A stretch of 64,000 nt of DNA from Marsupella aquatica (lineage: Eukaryota; Plantae; Marchantiophyta), in NCBI GenBank assembly GCA_973895155.1, contig OZ316899.1, positions 7,877,241 through 7,941,240 on the forward strand, written 5' to 3'. Shown here piece after piece: positions 1 through 16,646 of this stretch (the first letter of the stretch is position 1; each line of letters begins with the position of its first letter). The notes below the pieces were generated by a model. That model had not been told where the DNA came from and made no database searches. It saw only the letters and a list, made by a program, of their open reading frames with translations. The translations under genes were made by a program, and so were the position numbers.

Positions 1-1624
1 ACATCTTCAGACTCAGAACCGTCGGATTCAACAGCGACAGCTACAGCCGCAATAGTGGTAGCCCATTGTCGAGAATTTTCAGCAAGTGATTCACAATGGG
101 CTTTAAGTGAGGGAACTCTCTCGCAAAGGTAGGAAGCAAAAGCTTCCACAAAATGCCTCTCGGACTGAGAGTCACAATAAACAAAGCATTCCCTATCGCA
201 AAAAAATGATGTCTTCATGACTTGGCCACCGGAGAAAAAATCTAGAACCAAATCTCCCGGTTCTGATAAGGATTCAATAATCCTTTGGATCATCCGCGTG
301 GGTTTGGCATGAGGATTAACCCATCCTCCGCGACTACCAACTGTCTCAAATCGAGGGGCCATATTCATAATCTTGACGGCCTCTTCCGGGTCCAAAACCA
401 CTTTTAGGTCGTCGTTTTGTGTCCCCTCATCTGATTCCTTAGCTTTCCCCTTTCCCTTGTCGATCTTGCATACTTCATAATCAACATCCTTTGAAGTATA
501 CAAGAATTTTGGCTTTGGATAGTTGGGCTTGAAAACTTCATTCCAATTGACGTCTTCATCTCGAGAAATCCCTGCAAAGATAACTTCTTCAATCCCTCCA
601 CCCCAACATGAGTCATGAGGGTGCGGTTGATCATCTCGTGAATAACTCCCATACTCAATGTGAATGGTCAAAGCTTTCTCTTGTCCCAATTTACGAAGGG
701 CACCATGGACATTCAGTGCAAGTTGTCCAGGATGAACTGTTATCGTCACCACAATCGTGGGATTTTGTGGAAGCTCCACAATGTATTCAAAGAGAACAAG
801 AATCTCTGCTTCAGTCCACTATTTTTGTGGAAGCCGGCTAAAATCAACAATGGCAAGAGGGCAGGTCGGAGGAGCTTCTTGCAATGACTCTGGATCAATG
901 GTCTTCATGAGATTGTCGCTAAAAAATGTAACCCATGGTAGGGTCCGAGAACGTGATCCTCCGCCAAATCTCTGGCAGTATATATCATCTAGGCGGAATA
1001 CCAATGCCGTCGGCAAGATTGCGCTCTCCCGCGTATGATTTGGCTTTAAAAGGTTGGCAAGATAGACCTCGCCAGCGGCTCTTCGACACCTGCTGAACTC
1101 TGAATCAATTGCTAGCGTAGGAAGAACCTCAACTACTTTCCTCCAATTAGTATTTGTCGGGAAATTCACCGCATCCTTGGTGCAATAGTAGTCTTCAATA
1201 AGGGACTTGAGTTTCCGCACGATCTTCACATCTTTGGCCAACTCCTCTATAGATGGCATGTCTGATTTATTAGAGGCATCTTTCTTTAGCAATACCTTTC
1301 CTGACTTCACCCGCGTCAGTATTCTTGTGATGTCTCGTTGTGAGATCAACTCACCATCAAAACAATGAAACATGGCAACAGTAATTGCTTTTTCAGACTT
1401 CTCATTTCCTTCTACACCAGCTCCATCGGGAAGTTTCCCATCCAACCACAATTGGCATACCAAACTCCATAAATCAAAAAGAGCATTGTCGGCAAACAGT
1501 AACCAGTAGACATTACGACAATCTTTCCTTCCCATGGTCATTCTTGCAAGAGCCAACCAATCCTACAATTGCAAAGGAAAGTCTGTTAGTTCTCCATAAC
1601 TCAATTGTTTGAAAGCACTCAGGT

Positions 1625-1975
1625 GCGGACTGAGACCATCCCAGTCCAACACAGAACTAGACAGTATCAGTGGAAATATTATATTGAATGTGCATGATTT
1701 AGTTTGGACTAGGACCATCCCAATCCAAAACAAAACTAGACGGTATCAGTGGAGAAATATTCTACTGAATGTGCATGAATCCATTTGGACTGGGACCATC
1801 CCAGTCCAACACAAAACTAGACAATATCAGTGGAAATAGTCTATTGAATGTGCATGAATCCATTTGGACTGGGACCATCCCAGTCCAACACAAAACTAGA
1901 CGATATCAGTGGAAATATTCTACTGAATGTGAATGTATCCATTTGGACTCGGACCATCTCAATCCAAAGCAAACT
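1625..1975. repeat. About 4.5 copies of an ~80-bp tandem repeat inside intron 2 of the cargo gene
   Basis: Repeated GGACTGGGACCATCCCAGTCCAACACAAAACTAGAC..TATCAGTGGAAATATTCTACTGAATGTGCATGAATCCATTT; the core is related to the reverse complement of the 27-bp unit. Confidence 0.9.
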
Positions 1976-2819
1976 TGAAGCTTTGTGGTCAAAGACTACC
2001 ATCTCAATTGTAATCACACATGGAGAGTCTACGGTATTGTACCAATCAAGCAGTAACACTTCATACCTGAAATTTTTGATTGTCTTGAGCGTTTGTTTTG
2101 TTGTCCCCATGTTTTGGCCGGCTAGGTTTTCCACATTCCACAAATTGCCGCCTAGCATGAACGACTGTATCTTTGAAGCATGACTGAAACACCATCGTGC
2201 TATTGATAGCATTAGATCGCATTGAATGCTCAACTAATATTGATGATGGTGTTCGATGAGATAATATTCTTGACTTTCGAAATTCCAGCTTTTTTGCCAA
2301 TGCTGTTAGCTTGGCATCCTTGTTTGCCCATTCTCGAATCCATCTGGCTGCTCTGGCCGAATGTTGACCGCTAATGGCAAGGAATTGAACCTCCCCCTTT
2401 TTCACGGCTGCTACAAAGTCCCTCCTATCTGATTCCGTGTTGTCATATTGCATTAGGTTTCTATGTTTTGTAGTGTAAGGAATCAAGTCTGCTATGTGTG
2501 GTTCATGCCCTGGATTTCTTATCATGGAATTGGCCACCTCCTTTACATGGTCTGCATTCAACATTCTGTAACAGAGTCTTGCCGACGCAGGGAAAATACT
2601 CTCTACGGGAATAGAAAATATCGAATTGATCCCAAACGTATAATATTGCTCCATTTGTTGTAGTACCTCATTACCTTCTAAGACCTTCTTCTCCTCAGGA
2701 GCGTCCAACTGCTCGTCCATATCTTGTGAATGCACTGTCAGGTTTTCTGTAGTGTCATCCATGATGGCACTGTCAATTTTCTGTTTCTTCTTTTGTCTTG
2801 GCCTCTTTTCACTTGCACT

Positions 2820-2960
2820 TGGCTTCTCAACCGGACGTTTCTTCTCAACTGGCTTCTCAACTTGGCTTCTCGTACTCGGCTTCTCAACTGGCTTCTGAAC
2901 TCGGCTTCTCGTACTCGGCTTCTCAACCAGCTTCTCAACTGGAAGTTTCTTTTCAACCGG
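2820..2960 (-). repeat. Coding tandem repeat (VEKPSTRS / VEKP) in the linker of the cargo protein
   Basis: Repeated GGCTTCTCAACT and GGCTTCTCGTACTC units; protein reads VEKPSTRSRVQKPVEKPSTRSQVEKPVEKK. Confidence 0.85.
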
Positions 2961-3894
2961 AGGTTTCCTTTGGCTTTGTTTTTGTTTTCCCACTGCTCTT
3001 TGAGAGGTTGCTGCTGTAGTTCCCGCGGTCTCTGTTGTAGGTTCTGGAGCTTTCTCTGGCGCCTTCTCGGGCACAGGGTTTGTATTCACCGTTGGAAGGT
3101 TTCTCGTCTTTGACAAAGATTCTATCCATTGCTTTGCTTTGACTAAATCAAAGTTGGGATCAAATGCAACATCCTTATCAATTAAAACACCAGGCTCCTC
3201 TGACTCCAACGATAACAATCCAACTTTCTCAAGTAAATTGCTTAACGTCCAAGTAGTTGCAAAAGAGAAATTGCCTTGGTGCTTCATCATGTTGAGTTTC
3301 AAATATTGAAACCCATACATAATGTCGACTGGAAGCATACCAGTTACCCCGATGACCAACTTCTTTGTGTCATATGTCTTTGGAAAAAATCCCATTGACA
3401 AAACGCTCAAGTCACCACTTGCGTGCCATTCGACATAGAATTCTGAGGAGTATGCCTTTGACATGAGGTTAACTTTAACCCAGCATGACCTATCGTGCAT
3501 CTCCAGAATGACCGAATTCATCCCTCTCCCTCCAATGCCAACAGAGACCACAGGTCCGCAAACCAAAGTCAGGCTATCATTTGCTCTGCACTTTAAGGTC
3601 AAAACAGGTTCAATCGTGCTTGATGGCACTTCATTATTAAGCGGGGTTCTTGAGAACTCAAGCCCCCATCGGAAGCCTGGGGATCTCTCATCTAGTAAGA
3701 ATCCGTCCCGGCAGTCGGTCGGTGCAATCGCGGGTTTGAAACCAACAAGATCGCTCCCTGCATCATAAAAACATCATCCATGTTAGACTTATTAAGTTTA
3801 AAACATTTGAATAACTCTTGTTGGATTAGGATGGTCCTAGTCCAACTTGAGATGGTTTTAGATTTGCTCCTACAATCGAGATTCAATCTCCTGG

Positions 3895-4160
3895 ATGGAT
3901 TAGGATCATCCGAGTCCAAGTTTGGATTGGGATCATCCGAGTCCACGTTTGAATTAGGATCATCTGAGTCCAAGTTCGGATTGGGATGGTCCGAGTCCAA
4001 CTTTGGATTGGGATCATCCGAGTCCAACTTTGGATTGGGATCATCCGAGTCCATGTTTGGATTAGGATCATCTGAGTCCAAGTTCGGATTGGGATGGTCC
4101 GAGTCCAAGTTTGGATTGGGATCATCCGAGTCCAACTTTGGACTCGGATGGTCCCAGTCC
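3895..4160. repeat. 27-bp minisatellite (GGATCATCCGAGTCCAAGTTTGGATTG, about 10 copies) inside intron 1 of the cargo gene
   Basis: Directly visible; it produces the spurious DSDDPNPNL repeat ORFs. Confidence 0.95.
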
Positions 4161-5382
4161 TCTAAGACTTAGGGAGGATAGGTGATGGATACTTACTAGG
4201 GATTCTTGATTGAAATTGTTTGGAGTCTTCAAGTGCCAGTTCTACACTGTCGCTCATAGAGGAGAGGTCAAACTCCTCTGTTGCTTCCACGGAGGACTTC
4301 ACAAGGACGCGATTCGCTTCCATCTTTCTGACACGTGGCAGAGTGACACGTGGCTTCTTAGCAGGCATCCGATTTAGGGCAATGAAAAAGAATGGAGGTG
4401 GAGGCGGAAGCAGGCAGAGGCGGGGAGGCGGAGAGAGAGCGGAGAGCAAAGAGCAAGGAGAGCGAGCGAGTGGAGGCAAAGAGCAGAGAGCGGAGGCGGA
4501 GAGTGGAGAGCGTGAGCAGAGTGAGGAGCGAAAGAGTGAGAATGAGAATGAGGTCCTGGCTGGACCTCTCCGTCCCTTTACCCCCTCTTGCCTCACCCCG
4601 GCCTGCGTACGGCCGGTTGCCTCCTTCTCCTACGTACGGCCTGATAGTGCGTACGGCTTGCTCCTGCGTACGGCCCGTTGCCCGCACCCTGCATACGGGC
4701 CTCCTTCCTTGATGTCCTGCCTACCTAACAGCCTTGCACGGTAGTCCCCGCGCAATTAGGCTCGTGAAGATAAGGTGTGCCGCAAGCTAAGGTGAAGGGG
4801 TACTCAACCCTTATCTTCACGCGATTTCCGTTTGAGCCGACTCGAGCAAAGGGTATATTTCGGGAGACGCCCACTTCGGAGCTCATTCTTGTTCTAGTTT
4901 CCCAAATCTAAGCTCCATGTAATCCGGAGTTTCTCTTAAAGTGTTATGTATTGAGCCACTTACCTTCAATGGGTCAGCTTAGCCAGCTTCTTGACTTTTG
5001 GGGTCCTCTCAGTTTATCTTTTACAGACATGTGTGGTTTAGGGTTCAGTTTGTTTTTTACTCCCAAGATTTAGTGGCATATAGCTTGTATTTCAGGGTTC
5101 TGGGAAAGTTTTTACCAATCTACAGACAACAATGTATCCCCCTTGGATGTGATATTCATATTCTACCAGATCTTAATACTAAGGTGAGTATAAGGTTAAC
5201 GCATTCAAATATAAGGCTAGGCTTCATTATTTCATGAAACTGTATGTAGACATTAGGGTCTACCTTAAGACCACGCAAACTTTAGGCTACACCATATAGG
5301 GAGATCCGTAAAATACGGAGTCTTCCTAAATTTGGAATTTTCTTAGCTTAAAATGTTTGAAGTTTATCTCCCGTTACATTAT

Positions 5383-6180
5383 GGGTTGGTCTAGGATGGT
5401 CCTAGTCCAAGTTTGGATTCAGATGTGGACTAGGATCATCCGAGTTCAACTTTGCATTGGGATCATCCGAGTCCAACTTTGGATTGGGATGGTCCGAGTC
5501 CAAGTTTAAACTTGGATGGTCCAAGTCCTAGTTTGGATTGGGATGGTCCGAGTCCAAGTTTGGACTTGGATGGTCCAAGTCCTAGTTTGGATTGGGATGG
5601 TCCGAGTCCAAGTTTGGATTAGGATGGTTCAAGTCCAAGTTTGGATTGGGATGGTCCGAGTCCAAGTTTGGACTTGGATGGTCCAAGTCCTAGTTTGGAT
5701 TGGGATGGTCCGAGTCCAAGTTTGGATTAGGATGGTCCGAGTCCAACTTTGGATTGGGATGGTCCGAGTCCAAGTTTGGACTTGGATGGTCCAAGTCCTA
5801 GTTTGGATTGGGATGGTCCGAGTCCAAGTTTGGATTGGGATGGTCCTAGTCCAACTTTGGACTGGGTTGGTCCCAGTCCAAATCCAGAATCGGAGGATCG
5901 TACTCCAAATCTAGACTCGGAGGATTCCAGTCCAAATCCGGACTCGGATGGTCCCAATCCAAATCCATAATCGGAGGATCGTAGTCCAAATCTAGACTCA
6001 GAGGATTGCAATCCAAATCCGGACTTGGATGGTCCCGGTCAAAATCCGGTCTCGGATGGTCCTAGTCCAAATCCAGAATCAGAGGATCGTAGTCCAAATC
6101 CGGACTTGGATGGTCCCGGTCCAAATCCGGAATTGAAGGATCGTAGTCCAAATCCAGACTTTGAGGATCGCAGTCTGAAT
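5383..6180. repeat. Array of the same 27-bp family (GGATGGTCCGAGTCCAAGTTTGGATTG), diverging in its 3' third, upstream of the transposase acceptor site
   Basis: Directly visible; lies between a candidate donor AAG|GTGAGT (~5183) and the acceptor TGTGCAG| at 6227. Confidence 0.92.
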
Positions 6181-6227
6181 CAAAATTTGCATGACTTTGG
6201 TTGTAATCCATTTTTTTCAATGTGCAG

Positions 6228-9200
6228 GATAATAGGAAAAGGATGTCTCAAAGGTTTTCTAGGGGCGATGATGTGACCTTGACAATGGATGGTTACGACG
6301 TTGGAAATGGGACAGTTCAAAAGACAGATCCGCAAGAGAGTGTTCAAAATATTGTGCTGGGAGATAATCGAATTGGGGTTCTCATTGAGAAGGCCTTTGG
6401 TGAGACCAGGAAGCTCCCTTTTCCAATGCCTAGGGCGGAAAATCTTCATGATGCCATTGACTCATGTGTCATTTGGGATATGTCATGTGCATATCGATCT
6501 GCGGATAAGATTACTCAAAAACGCATCAGTATTGGTAGTTGTTCGACTTGAAAAGATAACAACATCCATAATTCTGCAAATGTACAGGAGGATGCTTCGA
6601 CCACCCTAAGGCCAGGTGATGAGGTTGAAATGTTTATCTCTGGCCATTGTGTGGCCTTTGGAGTTGTTTTCAAGACTGATCCAATGGAGAGATGTCATAA
6701 CATATTACTCGGTGAGTCTCGGGTTAGTGTAAAAATCACAGATGTGATTCATGGTAGTAAGACTTTACCTTACGCACATGGTGGAGCTGCAACAATTGAA
6801 GAGGCAAAGGGCTCCTGGGTTCTATGGGATGTGGCTGACGTCCACAATAAAGTATGGAATGTTGATATCGATGGGAGCAACAAATCTTCCTCTAAGAAGC
6901 AGAAGGACAAGGCGGATTTTGTTTCACAGTCTTGTTCGGCAAACACCACAGACACTAAGTGTGACTATTTTCATCGGGCAAACTGGATGTGAGAGTTGGT
7001 TGAACTCTACACTGGTTTGGATCGAACCAAAATGGTTGCCACGGGAACGATCACTGTCCCTCAAGTGATGGCGGCAGTTGATGATGAAATTCTTGGTGAT
7101 GACCATGTTGGGATTGTTGTGAAAGATGTCGTGGCAGCACAATACTTTCCCAACATCCACAAGGGAGTAGTGAGTTTGATTCGATGGCGGATTGATTCAA
7201 CAAAACTAGTTGCAAATGGAAAATTTTTGTCAGATATTTTGGTGGAAGGTTCTGAAAGGATGGACTCAATGGATAGGGATGAACTCAATGCGGATGTAAG
7301 TGATAGAGGAGTACTGCGTTCAAGGCCCTACAATTTTAACAAGAGGAATCAAGTAGATCCAAATGAAAAGAAGAGGAGGTTGTTGGAAACCAAGGCAATT
7401 TCAAAAACAACAGAGGCGTCAATTGATGACGTGAAAAGAGAAAATTGTTGCAAGCAAAAATGTTGTCTCATTATGCCAAGGGAAAACATCGAAGATATTA
7501 GGATGGAATTTCATGGGATGTCAAGCGAGTCAAAAACGTCACACATTTTCAACCTCTTTCACTATAGAGAGGATGATGTTCGTGATAAGGGACACCATGT
7601 TCTTAAGGGTATGGTCGTATGCAGACATGCATTTGCAATTATCCATGGTTTTAGCCACACCAAATATTATGATTACAAAAGGAGATATGTGGAGGGTTGC
7701 AAAATTGGGTTCCATGGCAATACGGGCTTGATGAAAACAAGGGCAAATACCTTGCATGCACGAGCTCTGTTGGAGGCTTTTTTGACTCGAAATGCAGAGC
7801 CCATGCCTCATATGCCTTATGGAGGGGCACATGGGACAGACTCTATTGAGTACCGTCTTCCGGGGTGTTACAAAAAGCTAGAGATTCTGGAAGATGTGAG
7901 AACAAAGATGAAGGAAGAAGGGCTTCCTCCTGTCACAGAGAATACTCTCTACAAGATCTGGAGTAACTCATTTGCAAACTTCAGTTTTCATAAAGATGGT
8001 GCATTTGCCAAGTGTACTCTTTGTTGTGAATACAAAGACAGTTTGATGCGAGAAAGAAGGAAAAAAGAACGTGCTGAAATTGAAGAAAAACGAGCGCAAC
8101 ATCTTCGTGAGCAAATGTCACGTAGATATGTTTACTACGCTCATTGAGTGATGGCCAAACAACACCCAGGAGAATATCTTTGCATTATTCACGACAAGAT
8201 GGATCAAGCAAAGACATGGATTCCAAAAATGGTTAGTACTCCTAAATCTCTTTCGGGTCATGGAATGCCGCTACCTATTGCTCTCACAGGGATGTTGACC
8301 CACGGGAGGGATCCAGGAGTTTATGCACACTTTAGTGTCACTGGCCTTTGGCCAGGAGATGCCGATTTCACGGTGACATCCTTGGCTAAGTGTCTTCGAG
8401 ACCTTGAAGAGTACAATGGAGACAAGACAGGTGACATGTTGGATGGCCTTCATTGGGAACCTCACAGACCTTTCTTTCAAGCCCTACTTGACTTTGAAGC
8501 ATTTTTGACGGGTTATTTGGAACCAAAGAATATACCGGTGAATAGGTATATTGGTTCTGAAGATGGAGCTGAGAGTCGGACTGAGACCGTCCCAAACCAG
8601 CAAGATGAGGATGATGGAGAAGACATGCAAGGAGAGCAAGGCAGTCCATCGTTCAAGCCCTTGCCAAGGCACCTAACATTGCAGATGGATAATTCAGCAA
8701 AGGACAACAAAAAACCAGACTGTCATGGCATTTTGTAGCGAGCTTGTGAGTAGAGGAGTATTTGAAACTGTTCAAATGTCTTTTCTAATGGTTGGTCATA
8801 CGCATGAAGATGTTGATGCACTCTTTTCAAAGGTATCATATCAAGTTCAGCACAAAGAAGTTGCAACCCTCCTTGCTCTTATGGCAGAGGTATGGGAATG
8901 CGAGAGCATTCATCCAGTTCCCAGATTGATACAAGAAGTTGCATCTTACAAAGAATATCTTCAAACTTTCAAGGTGAAAGATATTCAAGGTCACTCAAAA
9001 CCTGTATCATTTCTTTTCTCTATGAGAGATAATGTACCAATATTTCAGTATAAGTCCCATGTAAAGCAAGCTTGGGCTCCACTTGGTGGAAGGTGCATTT
9101 GGGCAACAGATCTGACAACAAATTCTCTTCTTTTACCAAGTGGAGAGCCCTTAGCTAAATCCATTGGAGAGATACACAAAAAATCTGAAGAGATTATCCC

Positions 9201-10005
9201 ATTTCTTAACAAGTACCTTGATTTTTTGAGAAGGAGTTGCACTGATGAGACATCTATAGCATATAAGGAAAGATTTCCTCTTGTGAAATATTGGGAGAGA
9301 ATTGTGGAGTTGTTGACAAATGGGCTCGCACTAGAAGGGGAGGGAAGTACTCAATTTCCCTTGGAAAACAGATTTTGGCCTAAGACTAACCACGGCACTG
9401 GTTACAAGGTCAACCAACCGGAACAAAGTGGTCCTCCAAGTGAAGATGAGGAGAATGCAGAGATGACGGCTCTTCAAAATGAGGTCTTGGAAGAGATGGA
9501 AGATCAGGCAGCACCATTTGTTGGATCTCGAGCTGAGAGAGAACAAGGACGATGGATTCCTTTACAAGATATTTGTGAAGGAAACTTTGTATTTCTTCGA
9601 CCCAAGGATGACTGGGAGAATAAAAATGGTGGAGGTCATTTCTGGTTGGTGAGAGCTTTGGGTTTGGTGGACCCAAAGCATGAAGTCCCAACTACATCTT
9701 CAACAAACCCTTCTCTGCCTCGACAGTACGCTCCAATGTTCCCAGTTGAATGGTGGAGGCCTAAACACTCTAGTAAACTTGATGTGACTGAGAGTGCGCG
9801 GTATCTAAATTGTTTCATGTCCACTAAGACATGGGAACGAGATCCAGGGTTTGGTGAGAATACTCAACATTGGCAGTATGCAAATTCTGCAATGTATGGT
9901 TTTAAATCTGGAATGAAAGAAGAAAACATGGCAGGCAGAGGTTTGAAGATCCCTCGAAATGTTCTACAAACTGTCCAAAATTATCTTCAAAGGATGGACA
10001 AGTAG
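6228..10005 (+). pseudogene. DDE-type transposase pseudogene (DUF7869-like core) with three N-terminal En/Spm Tnp1-like domains, a Cys-rich region and a C-terminal beta-barrel-like domain
   Basis: ORFs starting 6222, 6630, 6996 and 8148 share one frame, separated by single TGA codons (6549, 6990, 8145), with a frameshift in the A-run near 8710. Motifs: FAKCTLC, IIHDKMDQAKT, LTLQMDNSAKDNK, FLMVGHTHEDVDALFS. N-terminal repeats of the form VAxGxV..DP....LG....V.I......LP.....DA.G..V.W. Confidence 0.85.
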
Positions 10006-10254
10006 ACTTAGTTGTTAGAAGCTATAATAATTAAATAGATAGTTACTAGTTTTTATGTAACTAAGATAGTCACTCATTCAAACATAGTAATTTATGTACT
10101 AGTTATTTACTATTCTAATAGTTTTAATGTGATACTATCTCCTCATTTTCTAAACTTTTGATCATTATAAATATGAATGTTTGCTTTTTCTACATAATTA
10201 AAAATGTTTTTCTATTCATTCCTTTCTTTTAAATGATTATAATAAGAGTTGGTA

Positions 10255-10610
10255 GGCAAATGTACACTTTTTAGGCCAAATGTACACTTTATTGCACTAA
10301 AAGTTACACTTTCTAGACCAAATGCACTTAAATGTACACTTGTTAAGCCAAATGTATGCATTTTGCACTCAAATGTACACTTTCTAGGCCAAATGTACTC
10401 AAATGTACACTTTTAAAGCCAAATGTATCTATTTTGATGTTCAAATTTACACTTTTCATTGCCCAAATGTACACTCTTTAGGCCAATTGTAAACTTTTCT
10501 ATCCCCAAATGTACACTTTTCATTGGCCAAATGTACACTTTTCCAAGCCCAAAAGTACACTTTTCACTGCCCAAATGTACATAAATCAAATAATAATACA
10601 CTTTTAATGA
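10255..10610. repeat. AT-rich ~21-bp tandem repeat (CCAAATGTACACTTTT core)
   Basis: Many AAATGTACACTTTT units visible. Confidence 0.9.
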
Positions 10611-10869
10611 ATAGGCTGATAAATGCAATAGGATCTCTTGTACCCTGGCCATTAGAGTGTGTTTGTCTTCCGTAGTGACTAAATGCAAATGTAGATAGAA
10701 TCATGTGAATTGTGTTACATTTTGACATTGACTTAGTCAGATCCAAGAAATACATGTACCAATTTTGAATTTGGTAAAAAAGATGAAAGATATGTTGTCA
10801 TTTTATGAGTGACATGTATATTTCTGGATTCTGTATATATGTATGCAACAAGTGATTAATGCCAAACTA

Positions 10870-11190
10870 TGGATCTATGGTGATTGTCTATGATACTTGA
10901 ATCTATTTTGTGTCATTTCAAATTAGTGTACATGGTATAGAAGAATGCATTGTGACCTATCTTGCTGGTCTATGATGTTGAATCTGTTTTGAGTCATTTT
11001 ATATTAGTGTACATGGTATAGAAGAATGCTTTGTGACCTATTATGCTGGTCTATGATGTTTGAATTTGTTTTGGGTCATTTTAGATTAGTGTACATGGTA
11101 TAGAAGAATGCTTTGTGACCTATTGTGCTGGTCTATGATGTTTGAATCTGTCATTGCATATAAGTGTACATGGTATAGAAGAAGGCTTTC
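10870..11190. repeat. ~80-bp tandem repeat, about 4 copies (TAGTGTACATGGTATAGAAGAATGC...GGTCTATGATG)
   Basis: Directly visible. Confidence 0.88.
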
Positions 11191-11690
11191 TAAAACTCGA
11201 TGTGTTCTAATGTTAGCATGGTGAATGGTGAGTTTATAGAGTGAGTGTACACAAAAGAACATGAATGGAATGTGTTAATTGTGCACAAGAGTCAGGTCAT
11301 TCTAAGTAGTATAACGGGGTCTTCATCACTAGTTGACATGAAAGACTTATATAAACCCCACACATGCAGTATCTCCTTTAGTCATTTTATGAACCCATCA
11401 AGTATTCTTAAAGACTACCCACTAACACCATTTTAGTTATTCCCAATGACTCACCCAAACAGCCCATAAAAGACTGAAAATGACTCCCCAAAGCTACCCA
11501 TACAAAGACTACAAACGACTGAAAATCCAATCTCTTGTACGACTAATCATGTGGTTCTATAAAGGACTTAGTGGATTGTAGTGACAATAAATATGACTTA
11601 CAGTCCTATAAAGGATTGTAGTCCAGCACAATCGTTTGCAAGTCCTAAACGGTGGTGAATAGTTGTTTAATAGGGTCTAAATAGAGCCTG

Positions 11691-11703
11691 GTTTCTACTA
11701 GTG
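11691..11703 (-). repeat. Candidate CACTA-type terminal inverted repeat (CACTAGTAGAAAC on the minus strand)
   Basis: Matches the CACTAGTAGAAA terminus of plant CACTA elements and follows GACT/AGTC-rich subterminal sequence. The partner TIR is not in the window. Confidence 0.55.
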
Positions 11704-12520: not shown

Positions 12521-14085
12521 ACATGTTTTATAAAGTAGCAAAAAACACCCAGTCAAGGCCACATCAAGAAGTTAATTTGTCCATACATACAGTATGTCTA
12601 AGTCCTACAGTAGGGTCTGGGAGGAGTCCTGGATAGATAAGCATTACACCTTATAGTCCAAGTCAGAAAACTTCATATATTGCCGGTGACAAATGGTAGA
12701 GTAAGTTCACAGAAGTACAGTGAAAAGTTCTGACGGAGAATATTGGTAAAAAAAAGGTTACTACTCATACAACCCTCAATTTGTTAACAGGACAGGTCTC
12801 CAAATAGCTTACTCAAAGCGTAGTGGCAGGTGCTGCAATTGGAAGTACAACGTAAAACAAGGGATAGAAATAACTAATGATAGAAGTAACAAGTGTCAGA
12901 AATAACCAGGATTTGTTTATAAAAAAACTTTTCATAGAGTAATAGGTAGATAGATCTCAATGCCAGGGGTATAGAAAGAAGGATTACTCTATCAAGTCAA
13001 CAAAAAACAATTTCTTGGAGATACTAGTGGTGTGGATAGGAACGAATTGCTGCAGTGTTAGGAACAAAAATAATTATTAATAGTTAGCATGGTTAGTATA
13101 CGACATATATGTAGCTTGTTAGAACAAGCATATAGCTCTAAGCAGAGCTCTATGCATGGACCATTGGTGCATCAAATCGGTTAGTCTTACAGACAGAAGT
13201 AGACCATAAACCATAACTGACATGTAGTTGACTTGACTACATTGCAAGCCCCAGGTCCGTCATTCAGCCCCCGTCCCTGGGGTGAATCAAGTCAATTAAC
13301 TGACAAATTCATGCTATATGTTTCTGTTACCAAGATGCCCAGGCGGTTATATCAGTTATGGGCTAGACTAAGCTATTCATGAAATATAACAAAAAAGGAA
13401 TCAATATGAGAAGAGCGGTACCTGTTGAGCGCGCGCCATAGTTGTGGTGGACAGGAAAGGAATCTTACACAAGTGTGCCCTGGACTGCTCAGAAAGTAAC
13501 CCTATAGGGAAAAGAAAGAAATGCTAGTGGTAAAGGACAAAAGAGCAGTGTGGGGCAGAGTGCTAATGGTGAGAGATGCAAAGGACAAAAGCATAGAGTG
13601 GGGCAGAGTACCAATGGTAAGAGATAAGGGAGCAGAGTGACAGTGGGAGGAGATGAACAGCACCTGAGCCAGTCATTCAGCGTGGGGGATGAAGATGCTC
13701 AGAAGAATGCTTACGCAGAGAGGGGAGGTATCATGCAAAAGGAATGTTGAAGAACTGTGCGTCAGAACCAGTGGTGACTGTCTATTTTATAAGGATAAAA
13801 GTGTTGGTAGGGCATCTTACGTAAGAAGGGAGAGAAGTTGTTTTTAGGTTTTTAGTTTTTAGGCGTACGGTAGCCGTTAGATCTAGGTTGAATTTAAATA
13901 AGTGGTGTAGATGTATAGATCTAAGTGTCTCTTGCGTAAGGTGAGCAATACGTACTTAGATATTATTTTCATGAGTATGTATGGTTTAGTATTAGTATTT
14001 TAATGGGTATATTTTAGAGAGAATCATAGAGTTGCGGTACAAGGTGCTTAACTAAGACAAATTTATATTGAATGGGTCATCTTGT
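12521..14085. repeat. Long direct repeat (pseudo-LTR), copy 1
   Basis: Runs ACATGTTTTATAAAG...GGGTCATCTTGT and aligns with 18267-19836 apart from a few substitutions and one 5-bp duplication. Confidence 0.95.
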
Positions 14086-14219
14086 AAAAAAAGAGAGAGA
14101 GAGAGAGAGTCCCAGCACCATAAACCCGTGGTAGAGGCATTCCCCTGAGGTGAGTGTGGTATGCACTCACCCCGGAAGGGGAATGCATACCACACTCGCT
14201 TCATTCTCAGATTTCAATC

Positions 14220-16390
14220 TCACTTTCTCTTAATGATACGAAGACAGACCCGATGATTGATTTGTTCGTCTAGTAATCGACATAGTTCTACGATGGGGAA
14301 TCGAATACCAGGGAATGTATTTCTAGAGCAAAGTTTCAGAATAATTCTATCTAAGCGTGCTTCCTGAAATCCATTTTTCACAAGAGTGGATTTTAGGATA
14401 TGAATTTCAGCTAATGCAAGGATTGCGCTGCTAGACATATAGAGGATGGGTACTACCTGAGAGATGGAGATGTTATAAGATTGCAGCACAGGCCGGTTAG
14501 ATCGAAGCTGGATATACTGTTGGAAGGGAAAGGGGAGAAGTCGTCTTTTATCAAACTTGGTTGTCTCAAAAAGTCCGGAATGCCGATCTAAGATGTTGAT
14601 TTGGACGTTGAGAAAATGTCCAGCTGTTCCGAGGGCGGGTTCATTAGGTACATGCTCATCTATTTCTGATTGTAAGCTGACTACTTGTAATGGATAGATC
14701 CAGTATGGATTAGAAGTAGTCCGTGGTTCCATAGGATCCAGGAATCTAAGTATGTTTGGGTTGTTGATGATGCAGAAGTCGTTGATGTATCTGTATGTAT
14801 CTTTGAAGAGTGGTAGTAGATGGTGACACTTTAATCTCGCTAGTCGTTGCATAAACCAAAATTCATAAGAGACAAAATAAAAATTACACCATTGTGGGGA
14901 GCAGGAGAAGCCCATCGGGATGCCAGTAGCTTGTCGCCAAACTTGATCCCCAAGTCTGATAAAACAGTTTGCGATCAGCCAAGACTGTAGTGCCAAAAAA
15001 CGATCCAGTGTGAATTCAATCCAGCATGAGGTGCCAGGTGCTTGCCGACTCCAACGTGATTCAGTGGCAAGCCCGGATGTAGTATTGATGCGTACCCATA
15101 ATTTCTCCTCTTGGCGAAGGGAGCAGTTGTGATGTTCGAAGGCAATTTTAGCGATGTGACAAAGGGCCGAAGGTAGATTATCTTCACCAACTAAAGGGAT
15201 GGATTCATAGCATCGAGTTATGTCTGCCACAAAAAAATTGTGAATTGTAGAGGGAAGGTTTAGAGTGAATTCGTAAAGAGAATCGATAACCCCAAAAAAG
15301 GAAGTCTGGATATGAAAGAATGTACGTAGGAATTCTATCTGTTTGAAGGCCCAGGCTTTGAGTTCTAGCGAGATGCAGTTTAATATCTGTGTGATGATAC
15401 TAGTAGGTCCAGAGAAGATGCAGCGGGACGCATTGGTTATCCATCTATATTTATGTTTATGTAGTTTGTAAGAAGCCATAATATATGGTAGGCCGGCGTA
15501 TTGGAAAGTAATTTCGGGGATCAGTTGTTCGAGCTGTTCTTGGCAAGTATGCGTGACTTCCTCCAATGAGCGAGTGTCGAATATGAAGTCATCCCCTTGG
15601 AGCCGGTGTAGAGCTTGCTCCTGAATGTGTTGGATGCATAGGATACATATGTTGTTGGCAGCTTTGTCCAGCCCTGAAAAGAAGAAGTGATCTAATAGGA
15701 AACGTAATTCGGATAGTGCTGCCGGGAAAGACCTCCAGATTGATGTCGTTGGTGGTGACCGATGTTACGTTGTGCGCCCGTTTGCCAAAACGTGTAGCAG
15801 ATGTTAGGGAGCAGGTGACTACCAGTGTTGATGTCGGATTCCTCCATATCGAGAGCAGGTCCGAGCATCCGCCAAGCATGAATGATTTTGGAAAGCGCAT
15901 CAGTAAACTTCGTAGGTTGGGGAATTATGTGATTGAGACCAAAGGATAGCGAAGTTCGAAGTAGTTTATCATGGATGATGTCCAGATTGGTCATTCGTAC
16001 ATGGCTGGAACCTGGTGTTTTCACTAAATGAAATTCATTGCTAGTCAGTGGATCTAAGAATATTTTAAATCTGTTAAACTGACAGGCACAAGTTTCGCTA
16101 TCAGTAGTCAAGGAGGAAATGCTGAAGTTACAGAATACCATAGTAGGATGATAGCAAAGTGTAGATACAGTGTCCATGTATTTCCATCCAAAACAAATGT
16201 CTTCGAGTGCAGGAATAAGTGCATTCAGTTGGCACAGTTCAAGACACTCCGTAAAAATACGCCGAAGAGGTAACCATTTGAAAGATCTGTTTGTGTATAA
16301 CAGATGAATAAATTGTAGAGAAGAACGATCCCGACTGCGTGTTATCGTATGTCGGCCATGCGGCAGTTGGAGAAGGTGTCGGTCTTCTAG
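14220..16390 (-). pseudogene. Penelope-like reverse transcriptase (frameshifted), Naiad/Chlamys-like
   Basis: RT motifs ADITRCYESIP, QATGIPMGFSCSP, YRYINDFC (YIDD mutated) and thumb FDKRR...SNRP..SYNISISQV...LVKNGF. Upstream Zn-knuckle-like CACQ...HV..TNLDII...LR..LS.GLNH and FIHLLYTN...GWKYMDTV segments resemble Naiad/Chlamys proteins. Confidence 0.8.
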
Positions 16391-16646
16391 GAATGTAGAT
16401 ATACATACGTGTGTTAGATAATGTAGTGTAAGGAGATATAGATAGATGATTGCAGGGATTTACGATGTGTAGTTGCCATATTGCAGAAGCGTTGGTTCAA
16501 AAATAAATCATAATAATCCTAGAGATAAGAAGCGCAGTTTCATCGAAGCTGGTGCTAAGACATGCTATTGAAAACAAAGCAAGTAAGATTTATGCTCCAC
16601 TATGGGTCATTGTGAACAATTTGATGGTATGCTAAAGCGACTACTT

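Follow-up and report, generated by a model that had tools for sequence, protein, structure and literature searches.

The first 11,703 positions of a 64,000-nucleotide stretch of the liverwort Marsupella aquatica genome (contig OZ316899.1, forward-strand positions 7,877,241 to 7,941,240; hereafter the window) probably represent the greater part of a single decayed copy of a multicopy, cut-and-paste DNA transposon of liverworts. The element carries a DUF7869-type transposase and, diverging from it, an accessory gene whose product combines a ParB/sulfiredoxin (ParB/Srx) fold, a helical linker, the fold of a beta-class N4C/N6A DNA methyltransferase (MTase), and a small conserved C-terminal domain. 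A first-pass annotation, made from the sequence of the window, had raised the possibility that this fusion protein writes N4-methylcytosine (4mC) or N6-methyladenine (6mA). We find that the conserved accessory protein is more likely a DNA-targeting helper than a DNA methylase, and the reading that we favour, with moderate confidence, is that of a non-catalytic DNA-targeting accessory module. Catalysis on DNA bases is not expected of this module, because its MTase fold lacks the (D/N/S)PP(Y/F/W) loop and the phosphatase-like partner encoded beside it in related loci has DxN in place of DxDxT.

The accessory gene lies on the minus strand and had been annotated as three exons with canonical GT/AG splice sites, compatible phases, and one frame with a single TAG, all of which holds on re-reading the sequence. 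Putative exon 1 (4197-4368), which begins MPAKKPRVTLPRVRK and encodes a basic N-terminus, is placed by its ATG start and its canonical donor signal alone (A/GTAAGT, the slash marking the splice junction here and below). Exon 2 (2067-3757; acceptor TGCAG/GG, donor CAG/GTATGA) encodes an N-terminal conserved region, a K/E/P-rich low-complexity stretch, and the ParB/Srx-like domain. Exon 3 (1-1562; acceptor TTGTAG/GA) extends past the window start and encodes a helical linker region followed by the MTase-like domain. The phases fit, with the 172 nucleotides of exon 1 completed by 2 nucleotides and exon 2 ending at a codon boundary, and the two peptides quoted in the first-pass annotation, FLAISGQHSARAA from exon 2 and NPHAKPTRMIQRIIESLSEPGDLVLDFFSGG...CDRECFVYCD from exon 3, are both found in the translations. 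The join between exons 2 and 3 is backed by a Calypogeia fissa gene model (P0005), which is spliced at the same codon, and by continuous open reading frames (ORFs) in homologues. The clearest of these is P0060 (1009 residues, L001:271-3300), where the ParB-like domain, the linker, the MTase-like domain, and the conserved C-terminal domain follow one another in one unbroken ORF, which supports the fusion of the ParB-like and MTase-like domains in a single protein. The C-terminal domain (GY.W..GP.KG ... [DE]EYGSF near the stop; residues ~930-1009 of P0060) also forms the C-termini of P0007, P0010, P0014, P0018, and P0026; it has no Pfam match, and in the window copy it would fall past the window start. 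The K/E/P-rich stretch of exon 2 (PVEKPSTRS...), which separates the N-terminal region from the ParB-like domain, is the product of a 12/39-nucleotide coding repeat at 2841-2971 of the minus strand. It swamped word-based homology search; homology searches were run exon by exon.

A full scan with HMMER, covering 1.8 billion representatives, returned 51 matches, most of them forming a coherent family. The few weakest are bacterial MTases, among them a triple bacterial MTase, P0046, matched at E 3.8e-6. All named relatives come from liverworts, Calypogeia fissa and Riccia sorocarpa, and the others are environmental or Logan contigs. In DNA-type sequencing runs from three organisms, hundreds of contigs match positions 1-4600 at 90-100% identity, and the family is therefore multicopy. 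The single in-frame TAG of the exon 3 frame (819-821, minus strand) reads CAG or CAA, both encoding Gln, in most of the other copies' DNA contigs (821 A>G and 819 C>T on the plus strand), so the copies with a sense codon at this place that had been predicted do exist, and the stop is private to the window copy or to a minority of copies. The exon 3 region is likewise stop-free in the homologues P0007, P0009, P0010, P0014, and P0060.

The ParB/Srx-fold domain (2196-2663, minus strand) reads IPVESI...RMLN.DHVKE..NSMI.NPG...FLAISGQHSARAA and lies where such a domain had been anticipated, near 2200-2640. Structure comparison alone revealed the likeness: no ParB-type Pfam family matched at up to E = 1, phmmer found no ParB relative, and a family profile run against Protein Data Bank (PDB) sequences returned none. 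We modelled the exon 2 piece 2067-2708 from nine sequences (pLDDT 75.5). The top Foldseek rows for this model are Noc, PadC, ParB, sulfiredoxin, KorB, and SbnI, with weak E-values and Foldseek probabilities of 0.9-0.99. In a wide VIA-align search of 48,161 chains, the top eight all belong to the ParB/Srx superfamily (Z 8.3-5.3), including PadC at 8.3, KorB at 7.9, a serine kinase at 7.6, pNOB8 ParB at 6.7, and SbnI and Srx at 6.5 each, and the next, unrelated tier starts at 3.4. At the level of the predicted model, the ParB/Srx fold is thus confirmed. The superfamily has a G-x-x-R, or arginine, box, which is GERRxRAA in ParB and DGQHR in DndB-type members. In the liverwort family the sequence SGQHS, mostly within SGQHSARAA, is invariant; we take it to stand at the place of this box, with the Gly and the later Arg kept and His-Ser replacing the two arginines of ParB.

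The beta-class amino-MTase-like domain (140-950, minus strand) presents in order SDNL at the place of the GD motif, LAIVDFSR at the place of motif IV, an insert resembling a target recognition domain (TRD), NPHAKP (motif X), DFFSGG (motif I), and RECFVYCD (motif II). Such a domain had been recognised by eye in the first pass, and four comparisons agree on it. First, the Pfam family PF01555 (N6_N4_Mtase) matches positions 3-818 of the minus strand over motifs X and I with E 5.6e-7 and 30.2 bits, against a gathering cut-off of 26.7. Five of the six homologues tested match as well, some over profile positions 92-212; P0010 scores 29.2 and P0036 26.7, the three others stay under the cut-off, and P0060 is unmatched. 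Second, phmmer against PDB sequences found M.RsrI (E 1e-3), and also M.MboIIA and CcrM, over the same stretch as the PF01555 match. Third, an AlphaFold model of an intact homologue (L003:737-1669; 46-48% identical to the window piece; pLDDT 83.4, pTM 0.83), built from an alignment free of bacterial MTases, retrieves CcrM, M.PvuII, M.BceJIV, M.MboIIA, and M.RsrI in Foldseek at E ~2e-7. Fourth, VIA-align superposes the same model on CcrM across the whole domain with a Z of 16.2 (206 residues, root-mean-square deviation 3.3), on M.BceJIV, M.MboIIA, M.RsrI, and M.PvuII with Z 14-15, and on the rotifer N4CMT with Z ~13. The elements of the model run strand 23-27, helix, strand, helix, hairpin, insert, helix, strand, helix, strand. 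This is the beta-class order, and strand 23-27 (LAILD) accordingly falls at the place of strand 4. The agreement of the four comparisons confirms, for the domain as modelled, a beta-class amino-MTase fold with the permuted order IV...TRD...X-I-II.

Judged by its motifs, the domain belongs to this fold family but has most likely lost the ability to transfer methyl groups: motif IV is replaced, motif I has one residue too few, and the acidic residue following strand 2 varies. At the motif IV place the window has LAIVDFSR, and all aligned members have DF[ST]R, DFAR, DLLR, or DLVR, with Pro-Pro-aromatic in none of them. The bacterial P0046 domain reads IYHGDNLSLLREIGTETVDLIATDPPFN (segment compared, GDNL...DLIATDPPF) and the window reads FFSDNLMKTIDPESLQEAPPTCPLAIVDFSR; in this comparison, made by eye and backed by the model strand, with no residue-level superposition behind it, SDNL corresponds to the GD motif and VDFSR stands in place of TDPPF. 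At default settings hhalign aligned only motifs X-I-II, where DFFSGG of the family shows a one-residue gap against DPFCGSG of P0046. An N-terminal register for motif IV, obtained with hhalign at low mact, carried zero confidence and was not used. Most members still have the acidic residue that follows strand 2 (YCD or YSD), but P0010, P0018, P0019, P0028, and P0036 have lost it. The degenerate motifs CPLAIVDF[ST]R, DFFSGG, and RECF.YSD are found family-wide, and among the 51 matches no close relative in sequence carries SPPY or DPPY.

These motifs bear directly on the proposal that the fusion protein functions as an N4C or N6A MTase and marks the DNA of the element or of its host. The proposal can draw on a complete beta-class fold, on motifs X, I, and II that are still recognisable, and on the strand-2 acid of most members, and liverworts themselves use a beta-class 4mC enzyme, MpDN4MT1 of Marchantia (bioRxiv 10.1101/2021.02.12.428880). 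That enzyme, unlike the present family, retains TSPPY. Because D-F-[S/T]-R or a similar sequence replaces DPPY in every aligned member and motif I is short, and with a strand-2 acid that is not invariant, we consider a working 4mC or 6mA writer quite unlikely, and the suggestion made in the first pass is not upheld.

The head-to-head arrangement of fusion gene and transposase, which had been noted in the window, recurs in other liverworts. By tblastn with window pieces, the same layout, in which the ParB-like, MTase-like, and NIF parts read in succession away from a diverging transposase, was found at two loci of C. fissa (L002 and L008) and one of R. sorocarpa (L007). At L007, tblastn recovers the ParB-like, MTase-like, and transposase parts and no NIF, which is seen as a weak Pfam mark in a gene model of 1391 residues; this Riccia model joins NIF to the upstream protein. 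Among the seven related loci fetched, six show by tblastn a NIF/FCP1-like ORF downstream of the MTase-like gene (L001-L006 and L008 listed). Its Pfam match (PF03031) has E 2.8e-15, and the gene occupies 3100-4184 of L003, 3480-4510 of L001, and 14450-15469 of L002; that of the window copy would lie beyond the window. The catalytic DxDxT of FCP1/SCP phosphatases is absent from it, the corresponding LDxN sequences being LILDLNKV in L003, LILDCNGM in L001, and IVLDLNKI in L002. These ORFs have no ATG nearby upstream of the LDxN motif, which suggests an upstream exon. Calypogeia and Riccia belong to different liverwort classes, and gene order and orientation are kept between them at 25-48% protein identity.

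Plant transposons often capture gene fragments, and the ParB-MTase-like and NIF genes might be seen as functionless passengers of this kind, derived from host or bacterial genes. Stops interrupt the window copy and both C. fissa copies examined, which by visual comparison are very diverged at the protein level. The family nevertheless retains the order and orientation of its genes from Calypogeia to Riccia, intact long ORFs of 1009, 901, and 830 residues, and motifs kept across ~35 members; since unselected passengers would not keep such features, we regard this explanation as highly improbable. It is somewhat less improbable, though still unlikely, that the module is primarily a liverwort host gene family, a pair of ParB/MTase-like and NIF genes with a cellular function that some DUF7869 elements picked up. 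At three Riccia loci (L004-L006) the pair lacks a transposase within 10 kb, and one of these loci lies beside a uridine diphosphate (UDP)-glycosyltransferase gene; such loci may be non-autonomous derivatives or host copies. Several facts speak instead for the element: the near-identical Riccia paralogues P0043 and P0062 sit on different chromosomes, L002 has all three genes between CACNAGTAGAT termini, and the module is multicopy in Marsupella aquatica, while the transposase-less copies fit non-autonomous derivatives. The Riccia module copy that adjoins the UDP-glycosyltransferase gene (L004, 4385-5854) may itself be non-autonomous or domesticated.

The non-coding parts of the element contain palindromic arrays. 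A 21-bp palindrome, GGAYTNGGAT(GG/CA)TCCNAGTCC, occurs 31 times in the window, always within 1627-6102 and nowhere else in the 64 kb. It is arrayed in intron 2 (1563-2066, minus strand), where 79-bp repeats at 1627-1967 each hold the palindrome GGACTGGGACCATCCCAGTCC; in intron 1 (3758-4196, minus strand), as a 27-bp array of the same palindrome at 3896-4160; and in the divergent intergenic region (4369-6221), as a 27-bp array at ~5388-6175. In the C. fissa element L002 the same relative places (6748-7282, 8786-8970, 10661-10754, 13232-13328, 14184-14330, and 15633-15876) are taken by 35-bp arrays built on another palindrome, GCCTCGAGACCGTCTCGAGGC. Arrays of this sort could be protein-binding sites or sources of hairpins or small RNAs. 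The intergenic region also has a CT/GA-rich simple repeat (4433-4528) directly upstream of the ATG of putative exon 1, in what would be a shared promoter region, and its counterpart in L002 (8176-8505) is CT-rich.

As a non-catalytic DNA-targeting module, the accessory genes could work as follows. Both enzyme folds would be non-catalytic, and the fusion protein would act as a DNA-targeting factor, possibly nucleotide-regulated, with the DNA of its own element as the target. Candidate sites for such recognition are the arrayed 21-bp palindromes, found in the two introns as well as in the divergent promoter region. The partner, resembling a phosphatase of the RNA polymerase II carboxy-terminal domain (CTD), would tie the targeted DNA to the machinery of transcription or of silencing. 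The role may be transposition control or anti-silencing, comparable to that of TnpA of En/Spm or VANC of VANDAL. A bolder form of the idea, which we put forward as speculation and think doubtful, is that the fusion protein and the pseudo-CTD-phosphatase make up a transposon-encoded, sequence-specific system of self-recognition or anti-silencing. The fusion protein would then load on the element's own palindromic arrays as ParB does on parS, the arrays would co-evolve with it between liverwort lineages, and the partner would make contact with RNA polymerase II or the machinery of silencing.

Several points weigh against a targeting module. The tie between protein and arrays is one of co-occurrence, and the Riccia locus L005 has no arrays of this sort. 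GQHSARAA is unlike the arginine-rich box II of ParB, so binding of nucleoside triphosphates by the fusion protein is uncertain. Catalytic loss is read from the motifs, and a non-canonical active site may exist. Our search of sequencing runs found no RNA run carrying the stretch, the contigs that matched it were of DNA type and had no joints at the predicted introns, and splicing and expression are thus predicted. The transposase-less pairs at L004-L006 indicate that the module could live outside the element. Finally, both genes of the window copy are dead, the fusion gene through its TAG and the transposase through a frameshift in addition to three in-frame stops.

The decayed transposase gene (6222-10005, plus strand) encodes three TNP1-like N-terminal repeats, a Cys-rich region, and a DUF7869 core (DNSAKDNK...GHTHEDVDALFS; Pfam PF25273, E 6e-26). 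Its ORFs end at 6551, 6992, and 8147, and the frameshift, at ~8712-8738, falls between DNSAKDNK and the GHTHEDVD block. The repeats, at 6222-7200, are tandem transposase N-terminal domains of ~70-100 residues that are mutually alike and weakly match Transposase_23 (TNP1, E 0.17). That match and PF25273 are the only ones the transposase has in Pfam, with none of the Transposase_21 type, and no mention of DUF7869 was found in the literature searched. Relatives of the transposase are mostly from Riccia and Calypogeia, and the close ones are massively expanded in Riccia.

The sole terminus within the window (11690-11703, minus strand; CACTAGTAGAAACC read inward) lies at ...CTACTAGTG, ending at 11703, and reads CACTAGTAGA. 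In L002, an inverted pair set 15.1 kb apart, with CACCAGTAGAT at 1430 and CACAAGTAGAT (reverse complement) at 16547, encloses the transposase, the fusion gene, and NIF; the second member of the pair is where ATCTACTTGTG ends, at 16547. The conserved terminal motif is CACNAGTAGA, and by our own arithmetic a terminal pattern of 9 bases is expected ~0.08 times per strand in 21 kb. No match to the terminus motif was found in L007 or L008. The CACTA label first given to the element fits it at most in part: the motif conserved at the termini is the one just named, and the transposase is of the DUF7869 and not the Pfam CACTA type. The 3-bp target-site duplication that was expected to accompany such termini could not be confirmed, as L002 has none and its flanks, TAT and GTG, differ. 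Inside the terminus, subterminal arrays (10257-11151) consist of 22-bp CAAATGTACACTTTTCATTGCC units at 10257-10581 and 82-bp units at 10886-11151, and similar 22-bp arrays lie at both ends of L002.

Bacterial ParB-methylase fusions, such as Bce_0392 of Bacillus cereus (PMC5512222), likewise place a ParB/Srx domain N-terminal to an amino-MTase in one polypeptide on a mobile element. Because the domain order matches, acquisition of a ParB-MTase fusion as a unit is plausible by analogy. In the liverwort protein the MTase fold is of the beta class, and the gene differs from the ParB-methylases of bacteria and phages in being eukaryotic and spliced and in having a helical linker of ~230 residues, a replaced DPPY loop, and an extra C-terminal domain. 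CcrM, M.RsrI, M.PvuII, rotifer N4CMT, and MpDN4MT1, the last also from a liverwort, share with it the fold and the permuted motif order; they are host or restriction-modification enzymes that keep (D/S)PP(Y/F), whereas the present family has DF[ST]R and is transposon-borne.

Other transposable elements carry comparable cargo. The MTase domain of the DIRS1 retrotransposon is thought to be inactive and to serve binding, and ParB-HTH-Dam fusions are known from algae or chytrids (PMC4738411). Further retrotransposons bear DNMT or DAM genes (PMC4738411; bioRxiv 10.64898/2026.05.21.726589). All of these retrotransposons have, like the liverwort element, an MTase domain of a prokaryotic, nucleic-acid-modifying type, but their MTases belong to other classes, whereas the liverwort element is cut-and-paste and has a ParB fusion and a phosphatase-like partner. 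Among DNA transposons, Iyer and colleagues reportedly described in 2014 fungal KDZ elements carrying TET/JBP genes, which would be a similar case of a DNA-modification-type gene in such an element; both the transposase family and the cargo differ, and the liverwort cargo is probably non-catalytic. In layout, analogues of our favoured reading are the VANC anti-silencing proteins and their target repeat arrays in VANDAL (Mutator) elements (PMC5735166, PMC10398659), together with TnpA of En/Spm. Here too an accessory protein is encoded beside the transposase, and arrays of element-specific short motifs occupy non-coding parts and differ between related families. The analogy is one of layout, as neither VANC nor TnpA is related to the fusion protein in sequence or fold. 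The literature searched yielded no account of a land-plant cut-and-paste element that combines a fusion of ParB/Srx and beta-class amino-MTase folds with a partner resembling a CTD phosphatase.

Calypogeia and Riccia share the architecture, and no member examined has retained the catalytic motifs; together, these two facts point to selection, in a mobile element, for a role of both enzyme folds that is not enzymatic. If the system of self-recognition outlined above were to prove true, a prokaryote-derived partition or modification module would have been re-used as the chromatin tool of a eukaryotic transposon. For annotation, PF01555 matches in liverwort genomes will include many dead transposon copies, which are not to be counted as DNA methyltransferases; such miscounting matters in the liverworts, a lineage that has a genuine 4mC enzyme.

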